Notes under the pieces: generated by a model
The model's database searches: none
Seen by the model: only the letters and a program-made list of their open reading frames with translations
Told to the model about the DNA's origin: nothing
Made by a program: the position numbers and the translations under genes
DNA from: Okamejei kenojei
Lineage: Eukaryota
NCBI GenBank assembly: GCA_035221665.1
Contig: CM069169.1
Location: forward strand, 16,740,001-16,804,000
Reading direction: 5' to 3'
DNA: 64,000 bases
Shown: piece by piece, positions 544 through 31,861 of the stretch
How positions within the stretch are numbered: position 1 is the stretch's first letter
Layout of the letters: the number at the start of each line of letters is the position of its first letter

Positions 544-649
544 CTTCTTCTTGCCTATGGCGTGCACTGCCTAAAGATGTCCTATTTGATTGTGCACGCC
601 GGGTTGATTGCACTCGTCGAAGCTGGGCGGTCCTCGTGAAGGTTGCAAT
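544..649 (-). mobile_element. Degenerate, 5'-clipped copy of the ribozyme-headed short element
   Basis: CTTCTTCTTGC tail, GGCGTGCAC motifs and a partial ribozyme (P1 5' strand missing, several substitutions). Confidence 0.65.
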
Positions 650-4254: not shown

Positions 4255-7200
4255 TTTTTTTGTTAAATATTTTTATTAGACGTAAGTACATATTAATAGA
4301 GTATACTTCTCACATACATTCGTAATTTTATTAATATTAACAATTATGTCCTATACATTTCTATACTTTTTTTTGCAGGTAAGAAAAGATAGAGAAAAAT
4401 AAAGTAAGAGTAGGAATGAATGGAGTATTAAAAAAGTTATCCATCATTGGAGATATATCCATGATTTGTTATACGTGATTCTTCATCTATTCCATTATTC
4501 AGGCTTCAGTCAGGCTCTCGTACCGAGAAATTTTGACCCTTTAGATATTCAATAAATGGAGACCATATTCCTCTGAAAAGATCCAACTTGTCCAATAGGA
4601 CAAGCCTTAATCTTTCCAGATGAAGTGTCTCCGACATTCCTGTAATCCACATTTTGATTGTGGGGGATGTAGGACCTTTCCAGAATTTCAATAATAATTT
4701 TTTCCCAATTATTAAACTATAATCAATAAAAATTCTTTGATTCGTTGTTATTAATTGATCTTTTTCTAATATTCCCAGTATTATTAACTTTGAGTCAGGG
4801 ATCAGATTCATATTAACAACATTCGAAATTATCGTAAATATCTGTCCAAAATTTAGTAATTTTTACACAATTTGTAAATGAGTATGTTAAGTTAGCTTCT
4901 AAGTGCTGCCATTCATCACATATGGCAGATACATTTGAAAAAATACTATGTAGTTTGGATTTTGAATAATGTAGTCTGTGTAATATTTTAAATTGTATAA
5001 GAGAGTGTCTAGCATTTAACGAGCAGTGGTGTATATGTTGTAAACTTTCATCCCATACGTCAGGTCTAATGAATTGACCTAATTCGTTTTCCCATGATTG
5101 CCTATATATTTCTGTCATTGGGACATCGTTTTCCAGTAAAATATTATAAATATATGATATCAATTTTTCTGTGTTTGGGTGTTTATTTAGGCATTTACCT
5201 AAAATTTCTGTCTTTCTATTTCTAATTTCATGTGTATTTGCTTTTACATAGTCTCTAATTTGTAGATATCTAAAGTAATCTTTTGAATGTAATCCATAAA
5301 TTTGTTGTAATTCTTGAAATGAAAGGAAAGAGTTTTCCCTGTAGAGATCTCCCATCTTATTAATTCCATAGTTTTTCCATTGTAAAAAACCTTTGTCCAT
5401 CGTTGAGGGTTTAAATGTAACATTATTTACAATGGTAAGGGCTAGTGGTATACATTCCAATGTTAGTGTTTTCTTTATTTGTTTCCAGATACGTATTCCA
5501 CTTTCTATTATAAGGTTTTCACTATAGGTTTTCTTACCTATTTTAATATTGGCAAATAAAATCGAACTAATTTCAAAAGGCGAACAATCTTCTTTTTCCA
5601 TTTTTAACCAGGTTGGTTGTTTATCTGTCTCTACTAACCAAAAATTCATATTTTTAATATTAACTGCCCAGTAATAAAACATAAAGTTTGGCAGTGCTAA
5701 ACCTCCATTTATTTTTGGTTTACATAAATGTTTTTTGTTTATTCTATGGCTCTTATAATCCCAGATAAAGTTGGTGACTATAGAATCAATTGGAAAAGAT
5801 ATAGTAATTGCGGGAGAAAAATCATTTTTATTGCATTAATTCTACCTAGCATTGAGATAGGTAATGTTTTACAATATAAAATGTTCTTATTTAATTTATT
5901 CAATAAAAGTGGAAAATTGGATTTAAATAAAGAGTCAAATCTTTTTGTTAGATGAATTCCAAGATATTTGATTTTTTCGTTTGCTATCTTCAAAGGAAAT
6001 TGTTGTAGTATATGTAAGTTATTTACCATTATTGGCATAAGTTCACTTTTATTCCAATTAATATTATATCCTGAAAATAATCCAAATTCAGATATTAATT
6101 TTAGTAAATTTGGGATACTAATTTCCGGCTTTGTAGTATAAAGTAATACATCATCCGCATATAAAGAAATTTTATTTTCAGTATCTCTGGTGTCATATCC
6201 TATATATTTCAGGATGTAATCTCACCCGTTGAGCTAAAGGTTCTATTGCAAGTGCAAACAGTAATGGGGATAGAGGACAACCTTGTCTGCAGCCTCGGAA
6301 TAGATTAAATTTAGTTGATAGCATTTGATTTGTTATTATTCTGGCTGTTGGATTAGGGTATAATAATTTAACCCAAGTAATAAACTTCTCTCCCATCTTA
6401 AAAGTTTCCATAACCGAAAACAAATAAGACCATTCCACCTGGTCAAAGGCTTTCTCCGCATCTAACGAAATAATTACTAGGTCTTTATTAATATCTCTCT
6501 TTGAATATATAATATTGTATAATCGTCTCAGGTTATATGAGGAATATCGTTTTGGTATAAATCCTGTTTGATCGGGGTGAATTAATTTATTAATAACTGT
6601 ACTTAGTCTTTGTGCTTAGTCTTAGTATCTTTTGATCAGTATTTAAAAGAGCTATAGCTCTATATGATCCTGGGTCATCCAGGTCTTTGTCTATTTTAGG
6701 TATAAGTGTTATAATAGATTCATTTAACGTTTCTGGTAGTTTCTGGTGGATATAAATGTATTCATAGAGTATCTTCAAACGTGGTGCAATCAGATCATAA
6801 AATGTTTTATAAAATTCCGAGCCAATACCATCTGGTCCCGGTGTTTTACCATTTTTTAATGATCTGATAGATTCTTCGATTTCTTTTACTGAAATTTCAG
6901 CATTTAATGATTCTCTATTTTGTGAATCCAACCCATTCAAATTACATTTTTTTTTAAATGTTTCTATTCCTATCTTGTTTTCTGTCGTTTTAGCTGAATA
7001 TAAATTTTTATAATATTGCAAAAATGTCTCATTAATATCTTTAGGTTGTACTAATGGTTCGCCATTATATGATTTAATCCTATGGATTATTTTTTCTCCC
7101 TCCATCTTTCTTAATTGACGAGCCAATAATTTTTGAGGTTTATCTCCAAATTCAAATTGTAATTGTTTAGTGTATTGGTTTTACAATTTGATCTGAGTAT

Positions 7201-7566
7201 ATTTTATTTAATTTGTATTTCAGTGCAGCGATTTTATTAAGTGTTGTTATGGATGGATTAGCAGCGTTCTCTGTGTCTAATTGTTTAATCTCCTTTTCCA
7301 ATTCCTGTTGTTCCCTCCGATTCTTTTTATTATAAAATGCTTGAGAAGAGATCATAATTCCACGGGCATATGCTTTAAACGTTTCCCATAACAGGGAAAA
7401 GGATATTTCCGGTTTATCATTTATTTCAAAGAAAATCTTGATCTGTTCTATAATATATTCCTGAGTTGCTTTGTTTTTTAAAATTTGTGGATTAAATCTC
7501 CATTGTCCCCGTTTTTCCGTTTTACCATTTATTTTAATCATAAATGTTAAAGGTGCATGATGATTA
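4255..7566 (-). mobile_element. 5'-truncated, frameshifted L1-clade LINE (ORF2: end of endonuclease, RT, C-terminal region)
   Basis: ORF pieces with HAPL, WRFN, KTPGPDG, PGSYRAIALLNTDQKIL, LDAEKAFD, RQGCPLSPLLFALAIEPL, ISLYADD, KYLGI. Poly(A) tail (T-run 4251-4261). 9-bp TSD AGCACTTTT at 4246-4254 and 7567-7575. Confidence 0.93.
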
Positions 7567-7949
7567 AGCACTTTTGTCTACCTTCGATTTTCCGTCATCT
7601 GCAGTTCCTTCTTAAACATTTAACCACAAACAAACTTGACTGGATTTTAATTCGTGGATATTGGAAAGTCTCTCGCTATTATGCATGGTATGATTTGCAG
7701 CTTTGATGTTTTTGCAGCTTGTTTCAAAGGCCAGTTCAAGCTCGCTGATTTTGAAGTACTTGAGAAAAAGTGTGGGGGTTAAAAATGTAACAGGTCTGTG
7801 GACTACAATGGATGTGGGCTTGGGGGACAAAGCGACCTCTTTCCTTGTTCGAGCAATCTTTTGATTTGTGTTTGCTTTCATGTGACAACCATTAACATAT
7901 GTTGTCCTCCAGCCACCACATTGTATCTGGCAGAAGATATCTTTAGATA

Positions 7950-15979: not shown

Positions 15980-16260
15980 TTAGTTTTGTTTAGAGATAAA
16001 GCGTGGCCCACAAAGTCCATGCCGACCAGCGATCACCCGCACACTAGATATATCCTACACGCACTAGGGGCGATCTACAGAAGACAATTAACCAACAAAC
16101 TTGCACGTCTTTGGAGTGTGGGAGGAAACCGGAGCACCCGGAGAAAACCCACCCAGGTCACGGGGGTGAACGTACAAACTCCGTACTGACAGCACCCGTG
16201 GTCAGGAGCGAACAGGGGTCTCTGGCGCTGTGAGGCAGCAACTCTACCGCCGTGCCGCCC
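15980..16260 (-). mobile_element. HE1-type V-SINE
   Basis: Same motifs. Confidence 0.82.
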
Positions 16261-17346: not shown

Positions 17347-17400
17347 GGGGTGGGAGATTGTGACCTTCACGTGGTCCGCCCTGTTTCGACTAATGCAATC
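17347..17400 (+). ncRNA. Minimal HDV-like ribozyme fold, second copy
   Basis: Same architecture. The P2 5' strand GAUUGUG still pairs through two wobbles; J4/2 is CUAA. Confidence 0.75.
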
Positions 17401-17487
17401 AACTCGACGTGCACAAACGGAAGATCAAATAGAACAAGTTGTCCAACAGCTTTAAGCTGTGCATGCCACATGCAAGAAGAAGAAGAA
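17347..17487 (+). mobile_element. ~140-nt ribozyme-headed short retroelement inserted in an HE1 SINE
   Basis: Homologous to 25253-25390; ends GCAAGAAGAAGAAG; the HE1 sequence resumes afterwards, with a diverged duplication (gacccagtgtac / gaactggtgtc). Confidence 0.75.
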
Positions 17488-18005
17488 CTGGTGTCGGGGG
17501 TGATCGATGGTCGGCGCGATCTTGTTGGGCCTATTTTCACACCATAACACGAAACTAAACTGAACAAAACTACTCGAAAATGGCTGAAATGACTAAAGAA
17601 AACTCAATCGGTGAATCAGTCAGACATCCTTATCGGGAAACCCTGCAGCAAATCACCACGGCAACAGAATACGGAATAAAAGCATTCAGAAACCAATGGA
17701 GCTTTTTTATAAAACTATGCAAGGCTATGAAAGGTTCAGTCATGCCCCACAACTGGAAAAGATAAACAATCAGTAGAAGGCCACGGATGGAGACCGATTG
17801 TGTGGAGAATCTTCCCCTGCACGCACCGGAGATGCAACACCGGTCCTTACACCTTCTCTTCTACTCACTCTACGGCTATCAGGTCTGACTTTATGAGCTT
17901 TCTGCGCAGACTGCACCTGCAGTCAGGATCAAACCCAGGTCTGTGGCGCTGTGAGGCAGCAACTCTACCGCTGCGCCACCGTCAGATGTTTTACACACCA
18001 TGTGC

Positions 18006-24222: not shown

Positions 24223-25252
24223 GGTTCTAGATTAGCACGGGTGTCAAAGGTTACGGGGAGAAGGAAGGATAGTTCAGCCATGATTGACGTGATGGCCCGT
24301 GGTCAGGATGGAAGCCAGGTCTCTGGCGCTGTGAGGCAGCAACTCTCCCGCTGTGCCACTGGGATGCTTCAGTCTCTGCTCTCAAGCAGGGAGAGGGAGC
24401 ATGGGCTGGTTTTCCCAAACGCGGGCGCGTGATGAAACGTTCGGCGAGTTTGACGGGACCACGTGTGGGAGTAATTCATCAATGATGAAGACAAGAGGTG
24501 TGCCTCAGGGTTCGGCGCTGGGCCATTGCTGTTTGTCACCAAACGCGGGCAGGTGGGACGAGAGTAGCTGGGACATGTTGGCCGGCGTGGGTAAGTTGGG
24601 CCGAAGGGCCCGTTTCCACGCTGTATCACTCTATGACTAATTATCTTTAAAACGATTGGATTGAACAACTTGCAGAGATGAGCAAGAACTTGGGACTTGG
24701 GGGATGAGAATCGTAAAGCACGGAAACAGGCCCTTCGGCCCAACACATCCATGCCAACCAAGATGCCCCACCTAAGATAGTCTACCTAACGTGCAATTTG
24801 GCCCCTGCACCTCTAAACCGGGCACGTGTAGGCAAGGCAGGCATGGAGTAAAATTATAAAAAAAGTGATTATTAAATATAAATAGTAAAGATTTCCAATT
24901 CATTTACTAAATTCAGTATTTATTATTAAATGGTTGTTATTTTAATATTTTAATTTTAGGTAGGCATAATTCTCACGTGCCTCTCATCTGCAGTACGCGT
25001 AACGATATTGAACTCGCGTGCCGTGGGCCTTCACTTGCAACGGGCAATAATGGCAGCTGAAATCCTGCCTTTGCATCACGCTAGGTGCAGCGCATGCCCG
25101 CTCGACAGGAGACCAATCTGCGCATGCGCGGTTTTTAACATGTTTTAAAAGTCGACTGACTGCCCACAGGACCGATCTGCGCATGTGCGTTTATTTACGA
25201 TGTTTAAAGGTCGCCTGACTGCCCAGTGCCTACCCCGAGTAATTTCACGGCA

Positions 25253-25390
25253 CTTCTTCTTGCGTGTGGCGTGCACGCCCTAAAGTTGTCGGACAACTTG
25301 TTCTGTTTGATCTTATTTGATTGTGCACGCCGGGTTGATTGCATTCGTCGAAACAGGGCGGACCACGTGAAGGTTGCAATCTCCCACCCC
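25253..25390 (-). mobile_element. ~137-nt ribozyme-headed short retroelement with (AAG)n tail (Ingi/Vingi-like, non-autonomous)
   Basis: Starts at ribozyme G1 and ends CCACACGCAAGAAGAAG. Near-TSD TCACGGCA/TCATGGCA. Inserted next to the right TIR of a hAT element. Confidence 0.75.
25337..25390 (-). ncRNA. Minimal HDV/CPEB3-like self-cleaving ribozyme fold (54 nt), sense to the CD276 pre-mRNA
   Basis: GGGGUGG-GA-GAUUGCA-ACC-UUCACGU-GGU-CCGCCCU-GU-UUCGA-CGAA-UGCAAUC: P1 of 7 bp with a G1-U wobble, P2 of 7 bp, P3 of 3 bp, 7-nt L3, vestigial P4, J4/2 CGAA. Confidence 0.8.
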
Positions 25391-27068
25391 CACTCATGGC
25401 ACGTGCCTGCTCTAAACCTTGCTGATCTATGCACTGACACCAATGTCTTTTAGACGAGGCGTTGGTACTTTATTTGTCCTTTGTGGGAACGTTTGCGTGC
25501 AGAGTTTGGCGGCCAAGTTGGATGACAGTGACTGCGACTGGATCGTCGAGCAGGGTTAACAAAGTGATAAAGGACTTGATGTTTGGAAGGACTTTGTTTC
25601 ACACAATCAATGTTCTAATTGATTTGTGGGGACGTGGATGTCAGTGTGTGGTGCGGCATCTGTGGACGTCCAGAAAGTGCATTGAAGATGTGGAGCTGAC
25701 CTGCCTCCAGTGCACTCGCTGGAGTCACCATGACATTGAGTAATTGCACAGTGCGGCTGACTGATCGTTTGGCCACTAACATCACTGGTTCACTCCCATT
25801 CAATACATCCTGCGCCAAGCAAAACAGAATGATAACTCCCCTCCTCATGTTGAAGTGGTGCAGCGATAACATGTGGTCGAAGAGAGACACAAAAAAGCTG
25901 GAGTAACTCAGCGGGACAGGCAGCATCTCTGGAGAGAAGGAATGGGTGACGTTTCGGGTGACCCATTCCTTCTCTCCAGAGATGCTGCCTGTCCCGCTGA
26001 GTTACTCCAGAATTTTGTGTCTATCTTCAGTTTCAAAAAAAAAAACAAAAACAAAAAAATGGGGATCAGAGGGTATGGAGAGAAGGCAGGTACGGGATAC
26101 TGAGTTGGATGATCAGCCATGATCATATTGAATGGCGGTGCAGGCTCGAAGGGCCGAATGGCCGACTCCTGCACCTAATTTCTATGTTTCTATGTAAAGC
26201 AGCACCTGCAGTTCCTTCCTGCACAATAAAATGAGGCCATTGAGTCTTCTGAAGAAACTATCCCTGGACTGTTCCGTTGCCAGGCTCTCTAACTCCACAT
26301 AGACTCGACGACCTTTTAAAAAAAAAAAAATCAACGTGCATTTCTCAAAGAATATGTCTTTAATGGATGCAACTGAATGTGTCTTTAATGAGTTTAGAGA
26401 TCTAGCACAGAAACAGGCCCTTCGGCCCGCCATGCCCGCACCAAGGATAAGTATCTCCCCAACATTCTGCATGGGAGCCCATGCACAGAATTGTGTTTCA
26501 TTCCCCCAGTCTATGTGGGGTGATGCAGTCTGGCAACGGAACAGTCCAGAGATAGTTCCTTCAGAAGACCGAACGGCCTCATTTTATTGTGTGGGAAGGA
26601 ACTGCAGATGCCGGTTTACACCGAAGATGGACAAAATACTGGAGTAACTCAGCAGGTCAGGCAGCGTCTCTGGAGAGAAGGAATGGGTGACGTTTCAGGT
26701 CGAGGCCTGGTCTGAAGTCTGAAGAACGGTCTCGACCCAAAACATCACCCATATTCCTCCTCTCCAGAGACGCTGCCTGTCCCGCTGAGTTGCTCCAGCA
26801 TTTTTTGTGTTTACCTTCGGTGGAAAGCAGCATCTGCAGCTCCTTCCCACAGAGCACGGAGACAAATCCAGGGGGTGGGCTGCGTGATTAGCATCAGTCT
26901 CTTCAGCAGTTAGTGAAGGCTGCCGCTGGGAATGTGAGATGAGTCAGGGAGGAGACAGGTCCCGAGTGTAATAACACAGTGCTAATTTAACTGAGAAGTC
27001 AGTGTAATTACAAAGCCCAGCCATGTCTTGTCGGCAAAGAATGAATCTTGCTCATGCTGGCTTCCGTA

Positions 27069-29216: not shown

Positions 29217-29457
29217 NNNNNNNNNNNNNNNNNNNNNNNNNNNNNNNNNNNNNNNNNNNNNNNNNNNNNNNNNNNNNNNNNNNNNNNNNNNNNNNNNNNN
29301 NNNNNNNNNNNNNNNNNNNNNNNNNNNNNNNNNNNNNNNNNNNNNNNNNNNNNNNNNNNNNNNNNNNNNNNNNNNNNNNNNNNNNNNNNNNNNNNNNNNN
29401 NNNNNNNNNNNNNNNNNNNNNNNNNNNNNNNNNNNNNNNNNNNNNNNNNNNNNNNNN
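29217..29457. other. Assembly gap (241 N)
   Basis: N run. Confidence 1.
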
Positions 29458-30904: not shown

Positions 30905-30958
30905 GGGGTGGGAGATTGCAACCTTCACGTGGTCCGCCCTGTTTCGACAAATGCAATC
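30905..30958 (+). ncRNA. Minimal HDV-like ribozyme fold, third copy (element body lost just downstream)
   Basis: Identical helices; J4/2 is CAAA; followed directly by CR1 sequence. Confidence 0.75.
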
Positions 30959-30962
30959 AACT

Positions 30963-31330
30963 CTCAAAAGGATTTGAGTATAGGAGCAGGGAGGTTCTAC
31001 TTCAGTTGTACAGGGTCTTGGTGAGACCGCACCTGGAGTATTGCGTACAGTTTTGGTCTCCAAATCTGAGGAAGGACATTATTGCCATAGAGGGAGTGCA
31101 GAGAAGGTTCACCAGACTGATTCCTCGGATGTCAGGACTGCCTTATGAAGAAAGACTGGATAGACTCGGTTTATACTCTCTAGAATTTAGGAGATTGAAA
31201 GGGGATCTTATAGAAACTTACAAAATTCTTAAGGGGTTGGACAGGCTAGATGCAGGAAGATTGTTCCCGATGTTGGGGAAGTCCAGGACAAGGGGTCACA
31301 GTTGGATGATCAGGGGGAAATCCTTTAAGA
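30963..31330 (+). mobile_element. CR1 LINE fragment
   Basis: [32 protein letters not shown]...SRTRGH. Confidence 0.88.
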
Positions 31331-31861
31331 CCAAGTTGGATGATCAGTTCTCTCTCTCACACACACATATCACCACCACACCACACACCAAAGTGGGTGA
31401 ATCTAAGACTAGAGGTCACAGCCTCGGAATAAAGGACGTTCCTTTAAGAAGGAGATGAGGAGGAATTTCTTTAGCCAGAGGGTGGTGAATCTGTGGAATT
31501 CTTTGCCACAGAAGGCCGTGGAGGCCAATGGATATTTTAAGGCAGAGATAGATAGATTCTTGATTAGTGCGGGTGTCAGAGGTTATGAGGAGAAGGCAGG
31601 AGAATGAGGTTAGGAGAGAGAGATACATCAGCCATGATTATTGAATGGTGGAGTAGATTAGATGGGCCGAATGATCACACTCACTACTCCCCCTTCTGTT
31701 GTGGGGTGGACTCACTCCCCTCCACCCACCCCCCCCCATTCCAAATCTTTGCACATCCCCAATCCTTTCCACTCATCCCATTAATCTCATGTTTCATGTA
31801 TCTTGTTGGAAGATCAATTTCCCTCCTGGGATAAATAAAGTTCTATCGTATCAAGTACATA

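Follow-up and report, generated by a model that had tools for sequence, protein, structure and literature searches.

How does a retroposon of only about 140 nucleotides (nt), with no recognisable promoter, come by a defined 5' end? The question is raised by a short repeat in a 64,000-nt stretch of the genome of Okamejei kenojei (assembly GCA_035221665.1, contig CM069169.1, positions 16,740,001 to 16,804,000 of the forward strand). This whole stretch is called the window, and all coordinates count from its first letter. One copy of the repeat lies at 17347-17487 on the plus strand, and a first-pass annotation had read it as a mobile element headed by a minimal ribozyme like that of hepatitis delta virus (HDV). 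The present analysis arrives at a related answer. At a probability of about 0.65, the element is a promoterless, non-autonomous retroposon without long terminal repeats (non-LTR), 'bipartite' or SIDE-like in layout, which sets its own 5' end by self-cleavage of a minimal head lacking the P4 helix. The head matches the HDV-like fold, the family as a whole has an exact 5' boundary, a tail is present, one copy is 5'-truncated, and the insertions are dispersed and independent. Catalysis, transcription driven by the host, a role for the 3' module, a partner long interspersed element (LINE) and mobilisation would complete the picture.

Copies of the element in the window

Direct reading, alignment and blastn with 17347-17487 against the 64-kb window agree on four related copies, at the places where they had first been seen. 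With copy 1 (17347-17487, plus strand) as reference, copy 2 (25390-25253, minus strand) is 87% identical in blastn, copy 4 (30905-30963, plus strand) is 95% identical across the first 59 nt, and copy 3 (649-544, minus strand) is 71% identical in an alignment that begins at element position 11. No fifth copy in the window is returned by an nhmmer profile built from these sequences, and a 20-nt core pattern has four matches there against none expected from shuffles. All three copies with an intact 5' end, namely copies 1, 2 and 4, open with GGGGTGG, as had been noted; element numbering starts at the first G of this motif (G1). The sequence upstream of these three ends is unrelated between copies, which are therefore independent insertions and not duplicated segments.

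A minimal HDV-like fold at the 5' end

HDV-like ribozymes adopt a nested double pseudoknot in which P1 crosses P2, with P3 and P1.1 inside (PMC4908430, PMC4836649). The first 54 nt of the element, 17347-17400 on the plus strand in copy 1, can be laid out in this way; for copy 1 the assignment comes from pairing and from the descriptor described below, with no Rfam match. P1 joins positions 1-7 to 30-36 (17347-17353 with 17376-17382 in copy 1) and closes with a G1.U36 wobble that is present in all three intact copies. J1/2 at 8-9 (17354-17355) leads into P2, 10-16 with 48-54 (17356-17362 with 17394-17400), the arms of which are a perfect 7-nt inverted repeat. P3 pairs 17-19 with 27-29 (17363-17365 with 17373-17375) and encloses L3 at 20-26 (17366-17372), which reads UUCACGU without variation among the intact copies. 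G-U follows P1 at 37-38 (17383-17384). A 5-nt linker, UUCGA, takes the place of P4 at 39-43 (17385-17389), and J4/2 (C-N-A-A) occupies 44-47 (17390-17393), with the candidate catalytic C at position 44 (17390). J4/2 is CUAA in copy 1, CGAA in copy 2 and CAAA in copy 4.

All 18 proposed pairs, including C22-G37, form in each of the three intact copies, in agreement with the double pseudoknot originally proposed for these 54 nt. Energy minimisation of the 54-mer, which is restricted to nested pairs, returns exactly P1 plus P3. Within P1.1 only C22-G37 is a Watson-Crick pair, U21.U38 being mismatched. The P4 helix of the HDV-like class is absent, and the element accordingly falls in the subgroup termed minimal drz. 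Of the three positions in the head at which copy 1 departs from copy 2, C15U and A16G both leave G.U pairs and the third is the N of J4/2. In the minimum-energy fold of the whole 138-nt copy 2, the 5' strand of P1 (GGGU) pairs with ACCC at 56-59, just past the ribozyme. The modelled pairing is a possible competing fold in copy 2, and copy 1, which has ACTC, is without it.

On sequence grounds the published minimal HDV-like ribozymes are a stronger comparison than Rfam. The minimal drz class (Riccitelli 2014, as cited in Kienbeck 2024, PMC10879173) includes the phage theta ribozymes. Its members lack the P4 domain, and the tRNA-associated theta subgroup self-cleaves in vitro (PMC10879173). The hits of that study, cut in 13 segments in its Supplementary Data File 4, served as the comparison list. 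Cut likewise, the 54-mer reads GGGGTGG, GA, GATTGCA, ACC, T, TC, ACGT, GGT, CCGCCCT, GT, TTCGA, CGAA, TGCAATC, and it shares the 13 segments, their lengths and the core letters (T-NC-NCGY, G-N, C-N-R-A) with the phage ribozymes of PMC10879173. Linkers of 5 nt and the J4/2 sequences CTAA, CGAA(T) and CAAA are all present in the published list (PMC10879173). The element thus has the architecture of the published class, and the small, almost P4-less ribozyme of the first reading is borne out as a fold.

The likeness extends to a length of 52-55 nt, the absence of P4 with a linker of 5-7 nt instead, an identical segment order, P3 as ACC/GGU, L3 as U-NC-NCGY, a G after P1, J4/2 as C-N-R-A, and P1 and P2 of 6-7 base pairs (bp). 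The differences lie in the setting and in P1.1. About 99% of the published minimal ribozymes are in Caudoviricetes phages, often at the 3' ends of transfer RNA (tRNA) genes (PMC10879173), whereas the element's ribozyme heads a vertebrate retroposon; and the second pair of P1.1, which is U.U in the element, covaries in the phage examples (CC/GG, TC/GA, GC/GC).

A descriptor modelled on the published segmentation matches the window only at 17347, 30905 and 25390, and has no match in 400 simulated 64-kb windows (first-order Markov model, both strands). A looser descriptor gives 0.15 chance matches per window, or 0.03 when P2 is required to have at least 7 bp. These rates bear on the reading of the repeat as an ordinary short interspersed element (SINE) transcribed by RNA polymerase III (pol III), with an unrecognised head derived from a small RNA and a merely coincidental likeness to HDV. 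The size and abundance are indeed SINE-like and the tail is of LINE type, but a descriptor with a chance rate below one in 400 windows matches at the first base of each of the three intact copies. ARAGORN finds no tRNA gene in the element, and no tRNA, 5S, 7SL or small nuclear RNA family of Rfam matches it, even at E up to 10. As the first-pass annotation had said, the element has no acceptable A or B box, the best candidates for each having at least three mismatches. A pol III SINE of this kind is therefore very improbable.

Rfam itself, at gathering thresholds, has no match in the whole window, to hammerhead families or to any others. With the search confined to 63 nt at copy 2 or at copy 4, only HDV-type families match among 4227. 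The F. prausnitzii HDV ribozyme family (RF02682) gives an end-to-end alignment over G1 to C54 (14.4 bits, E 0.53), spanning exactly 25390-25337 at copy 2, and the CPEB3 family (RF00622) matches copies 2 and 4 with E 0.97 and 4.2 at 9-11 bits. This agreement is weak support for an HDV-like identity.

The CPEB3 ribozyme is nevertheless close in its core, as had been recognised from L3 and J4/2. L3 UUCACGU, CCCUGU and CGAAU of the element match the Rfam CPEB3 consensus, so that L3, the G-U after P1, J4/2 CGAA and the next U are identical in letters and numbering. Both also have G1.U36 and a P1.1 of one G-C plus U-U (PMC4836649). In contrast, the CPEB3 ribozyme has a 7-bp P4 hairpin, is intronic and single-copy, and its P1, P2 and P3 sequences are unlike those of the element. 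The identity of the cores is largely explained by shared constraint, not necessarily by descent, since the F. prausnitzii consensus has most of the same letters. Separately, a metagenome scan with a core pattern in which the 3' strand of P1 was left free gave a single match, a coding sequence rejected as chance.

The 5' boundary across the family

Contigs of four public runs, with four organism labels and no run on record as RNA, were aligned to 24900-25900. Several thousand contig pieces match the element. Similarity to copy 2 stops exactly at 25390, that is at G1, in 491, 72, 36 and 18 contigs of the four runs; stops at 25389, 25391 or 25392 are far less frequent, and past 25390 the agreement is no better than chance. 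On the 3' side contigs stop at 25253 and continue as CTT units, equivalent to a longer (AAG)n tail. Because similarity ends at G1, the 5' end of the family coincides with the predicted cleavage site in most copies and in several genomes, so that the common start anticipated for the copies is seen well beyond the window. This boundary is the most telling result: its position is that expected, and the chemistry of cleavage there is predicted. The ribozyme of copy 2 is near the family consensus, the contigs having a majority difference at one element position only, in the body.

Repeats spread at the DNA level, such as a miniature inverted-repeat transposable element, a satellite fragment or a segmental duplication, may also be considered, the more so as target-site duplications (TSDs) are unclear for two copies. 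The thousands of contig pieces with sharp ends speak against such an origin, as do the lack of terminal inverted repeats and the asymmetry of the ends, only one of which bears a microsatellite tail. One copy is moreover 5'-truncated and the flanks are unrelated. The chance that the element is a DNA-level repeat appears close to negligible.

The contigs split into two body variants at 25314-25321 (about element positions 70-77), ACAATCAAATAAGATC and ACAAACGGAAGATC. Since these variants match copy 2 and copy 1, at least two subfamilies exist. In each of the four runs, summed contig depth over 24900-25900 drops from the ribozyme core toward the element's 3' end. The slope is the opposite of what 5' truncation leads one to expect and might reflect stronger conservation of the head or its presence in other families as well; contig depth is unsuited to ranking parts of the element.

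One reading frame is open through the entire element and gives a peptide of 45 residues. A full HMMER search with this peptide finds an open reading frame (ORF) of a Logan contig (P0003), which ends in GWRIATFTWSALFQQMQSTLRAQSNKIK and forms a cluster of one member. The similarity sets in with the codon containing G1, and the substituted residues map to J1/2, the linker and the N of J4/2. Judged by these letters, P0003 is a real further copy of the element, outside the window. Two other HMMER matches of the peptide are unrelated repeat proteins and were set aside as chance, and a word-index search with the same peptide gave no match.

The 3' module, tail and insertion features

Behind the head stand a body, or 3' module, and a short tail. 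In copy 2 the ribozyme fold (25337-25390, minus strand, with G1 at 25390) is followed by a body at 25262-25336 (minus strand) with the inverted repeats GGCGTGCAC/GTGCACGCC and AAGTTGTC/GACAACTT. The 9-bp outer stem, GGCGUGCAC/GUGCACGCC, encloses an 8-bp hairpin, AAGUUGUC/GACAACUU, with a z-score of -3.3, and none of 200 shuffles folds as well. An (AAG)3 tail ends this copy at 25253-25261 (minus strand), and contigs from other loci have further CTT units there. In copy 1 the body (17401-17473, plus strand) has a degraded outer stem, and the tail is an (AAG)4AA microsatellite (17474-17487, plus strand). The nested inverted repeats plus (AAG)n tail described at first pass are accordingly clear in copy 2, but the outer 3' stem of copy 1 is imperfect. 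Tails of (AAG)3-4 stand at all three copies with an intact 3' end and nowhere else in the window.

Copy 3 (544-649, minus strand) is older and begins at element position 11, without the 5' strand of P1. The loss of its first 10 nt is as expected from incomplete reverse transcription. This copy also has a 22-nt internal deletion, and it keeps the outer 3' stem and an (AAG)3 tail. Copy 2 has a candidate TSD, GTGCCATGA at 25394-25402, 3 nt before G1, and GTGCCGTGA at 25245-25253, abutting the tail (both on the minus strand); the two arms are 9 nt long with one mismatch (p about 0.1 when position is not used). In a comparison of copies 1 and 2, 3 of the 54 ribozyme positions differ, as against 14 of 72 in the body (Fisher p = 0.03), and this lower divergence of the ribozyme is consistent with a head that was under constraint in the source elements.

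Copy 4 consists of the first 59 nt of the element only, with an intact ribozyme, and is part of a chimera at 30905-31675. Element positions 1-59 (30905-30963, plus strand) are followed by TCA (3 nt) and then by the 5'-truncated 3' part of a CR1-like LINE (30964-31675, plus strand), which lies outside the element family and has a motif-carrying ORF. The remainder of the element is not found 3' of the end of this LINE fragment. The junction could stem from a nested insertion plus a deletion, or a LINE reverse transcriptase could have switched templates to an element RNA with its 5' end at G1.

An unrelated repeat with the core GCCGACCATCGATCACCC is abundant, with 9 copies in the window against 0.03 expected, including 462-479, 16021-16038 and 17498-17515. 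It adjoins copies 1 and 3 of the element in opposite relative orientations. Given this and its 9 copies, its proximity is regarded as coincidence.

Self-cleavage or an internal promoter

Several observations weigh against the reading as a self-cleaving retroposon. With one Watson-Crick pair in P1.1 and no P4, the ribozyme could be slow or condition-dependent. Compensatory changes are absent among the copies in the window: all differences are one-sided, and a shuffle control does equally well. The window therefore offers no evidence of covariation. The three changes do sit at the positions claimed at first pass, where the fold tolerates them, but being one-sided they add no covariation support, and the hoped-for helix covariation is not to be had from four copies. 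The Rfam scores are far under gathering (14.4 against 44 for RF02682 and 11 against 35 for RF00622), and copy 1 has no match on its 63 nt and, at E up to 10 on the surrounding 221 nt, only two unrelated chance matches. Comparison with HDV models thus singles out HDV-type families for copies 2 and 4, but below threshold and with nothing for copy 1. For the most part the low scores reflect models that look for a P4 hairpin and are unable to score P2, and the E-values understate the agreement because they are multiplied by the number of families although the HDV hypothesis was preset. Copies 1 and 3 have no TSD above chance. No LINE in the window shares the 5' or the 3' end of the element by blastn, nhmmer or tail search. 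Catalysis and transcription from host genes are inferred, the runs compared being contigs only. Lastly, an internal promoter with its transcription start at G1 would produce the same boundary.

The last point leads to the alternative that the head adopts or resembles the HDV-like fold without cleaving, transcription being started at G1 by an internal promoter, with the pseudoknot serving as promoter element, 5' protective structure or protein-binding site. A precedent for part of this is Pr77 of L1Tc/NARTc, which acts as an internal promoter and is also an HDV-like ribozyme (PMC3383444). The weak P1.1, the absent P4 and the lack of covariation would suit a head that does not cleave. The element also has no run of four T, so that its transcription by pol III is possible. 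Against this, the head has every catalytic-core position of the published minimal HDV-like ribozymes, among them the J4/2 C and the cleavage-site G.U, and A and B boxes are not recognisable (at least three mismatches each). A promoter alone, furthermore, needs neither a 7-bp P1, nor a 7-bp P2, nor an exact L3. A non-cleaving promoter head is considered unlikely, and self-cleavage is retained as the preferred account of the 5' end.

Proposed cycle

Under the self-cleavage reading, a copy would be transcribed passively within a host transcript, for example in an intron or in read-through RNA. The ribozyme would fold co-transcriptionally as P1/P2 and P3/P1.1 and cut 5' of G1, with C44 of J4/2 as the predicted general acid together with the G1.U36 wobble. 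The product RNA would start exactly at G1 and carry the folded pseudoknot at its 5' end. Its 3' stem-loop and (AAG)n tail may then be recognised by the reverse transcriptase of a putative autonomous LINE, which would copy the element RNA by target-primed reverse transcription. Provided that the complementary DNA is full-length, a complete ribozyme would be regenerated at each new locus.

As to the partner, the first-pass annotation had favoured an internally deleted LINE of the Ingi/Vingi clade. This origin is compatible with the cycle above, and it has in its favour that the Ingi clade has 5' HDV-like ribozymes and that Ingi and Vingi yield bipartite non-autonomous derivatives (PMC5786205, PMC4035085). 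Nothing in the window ties the element to any LINE clade, however, no LINE there sharing either end. RTE, R2, R4, R1 and LOA elements also bear 5' ribozymes (PMC5786205), and the literature examined reports none for Vingi itself. An Ingi/Vingi parentage is thus rather unlikely. By nhmmer the element body weakly resembles a CR1-like LINE region (E 0.33, the same region being matched three times), a likeness judged unconvincing.

Related elements in other taxa

Non-autonomous LINE derivatives headed by a ribozyme are already described in other taxa (PMC3414825, PMC4035085, PMC5786205). The R2 SIDEs of Drosophila are non-autonomous non-LTR elements that retain an HDV-like ribozyme at the 5' end along with the 3' end that reverse transcription requires (PMC3414825). 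They are site-specific in 28S ribosomal DNA, cut from the ribosomal RNA co-transcript and headed by larger ribozymes, whereas the present element is dispersed and its ribozyme minimal. NARTc, RIME and SIDER1/2 of trypanosomatids are, like the element, short, dispersed and non-autonomous, with an HDV-like ribozyme in the first approximately 77 nt that cleaves at +1 (PMC4035085). They differ in their protist hosts, in a longer ribozyme with P4 and in their known partner LINEs, L1Tc and ingi. The Pr77/L1TcRz head differs in addition in acting as a promoter (PMC3383444).

Bipartite non-autonomous LINEs (Kojima 2018, PMC5786205) likewise join the 5' end of a LINE to its 3' end without an ORF, and a 5' ribozyme has been proposed as the reason why they keep the extreme 5' end (PMC5786205). 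These are RTE, Ingi, Vingi and R2 derivatives with known parents, typically of a few hundred bp, while the 5' part of the present element is the ribozyme only. The present case differs in its vertebrate host, to which the B7-family IgV and IgC exons and the CR1-like reverse-transcriptase fragments of the window also point, in a highly abundant, dispersed family whose members measure only about 140 nt, and in a minimal ribozyme without P4. A literature search, which did not cover Repbase and Dfam, found no paper that describes an element of this kind from vertebrates or cartilaginous fishes.

Possible significance

If the head cleaves, a SINE-like element of vertebrates would spread without a promoter, any read-through transcript releasing a defined and structured 5' end, and minimal HDV-like ribozymes would extend from an almost purely phage setting (PMC10879173) to animal genomes. 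Intronic copies, if active, would be built-in RNA cutters and predict a strand bias of copies within genes. The combination of a 54-nt self-processing head with a 3' recognition module of about 80 nt would also be the layout that is engineered for retrotransposon-based gene writing (PMC13708176).

A more far-reaching proposal is that an active P4-less HDV-like ribozyme is present at very high copy number in vertebrates, that this is the first eukaryotic home of minimal drz, a class so far met almost only in gut phages, that the CPEB3 ribozyme was recruited from its lineage and that sense intronic copies cut pre-mRNAs genome-wide. As a whole this proposal is distinctly improbable. The CPEB3 part of it comes from the fact that the element and CPEB3 have the entire single-stranded core in common, along with the unusual P1.1 of G-C plus U-U, which would make the element family a candidate source pool for the CPEB3 ribozyme. 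Were the proposal true, the transcripts cut might include that of a B7-family gene in the window, which has a copy of the element on the same strand.

Other features of the window

Two runs of N lie in the window, at 29217-29457 and 50617-51607. LINE-type ORFs are found at 4506-7571 (minus strand) and 62214-62840 (minus strand), neither with a terminal (AAG)n tail. The ORFs at 4813-5682 and 6590-7126 have no Pfam match, and the one at 62214-62840 has an RVT_1 match (E 6e-8) and a CR1-type motif. B7-family exons lie at 42641-42222 and 40237-39842 (both minus strand). Of their ORFs, one is of IgV type (Pfam V-set, E 1e-7) and the other of IgC type (C2-set_3, E 1e-15; CD80-like C2-set). On the same strand, about 14.5 kb downstream of these exons, is copy 2 of the element.

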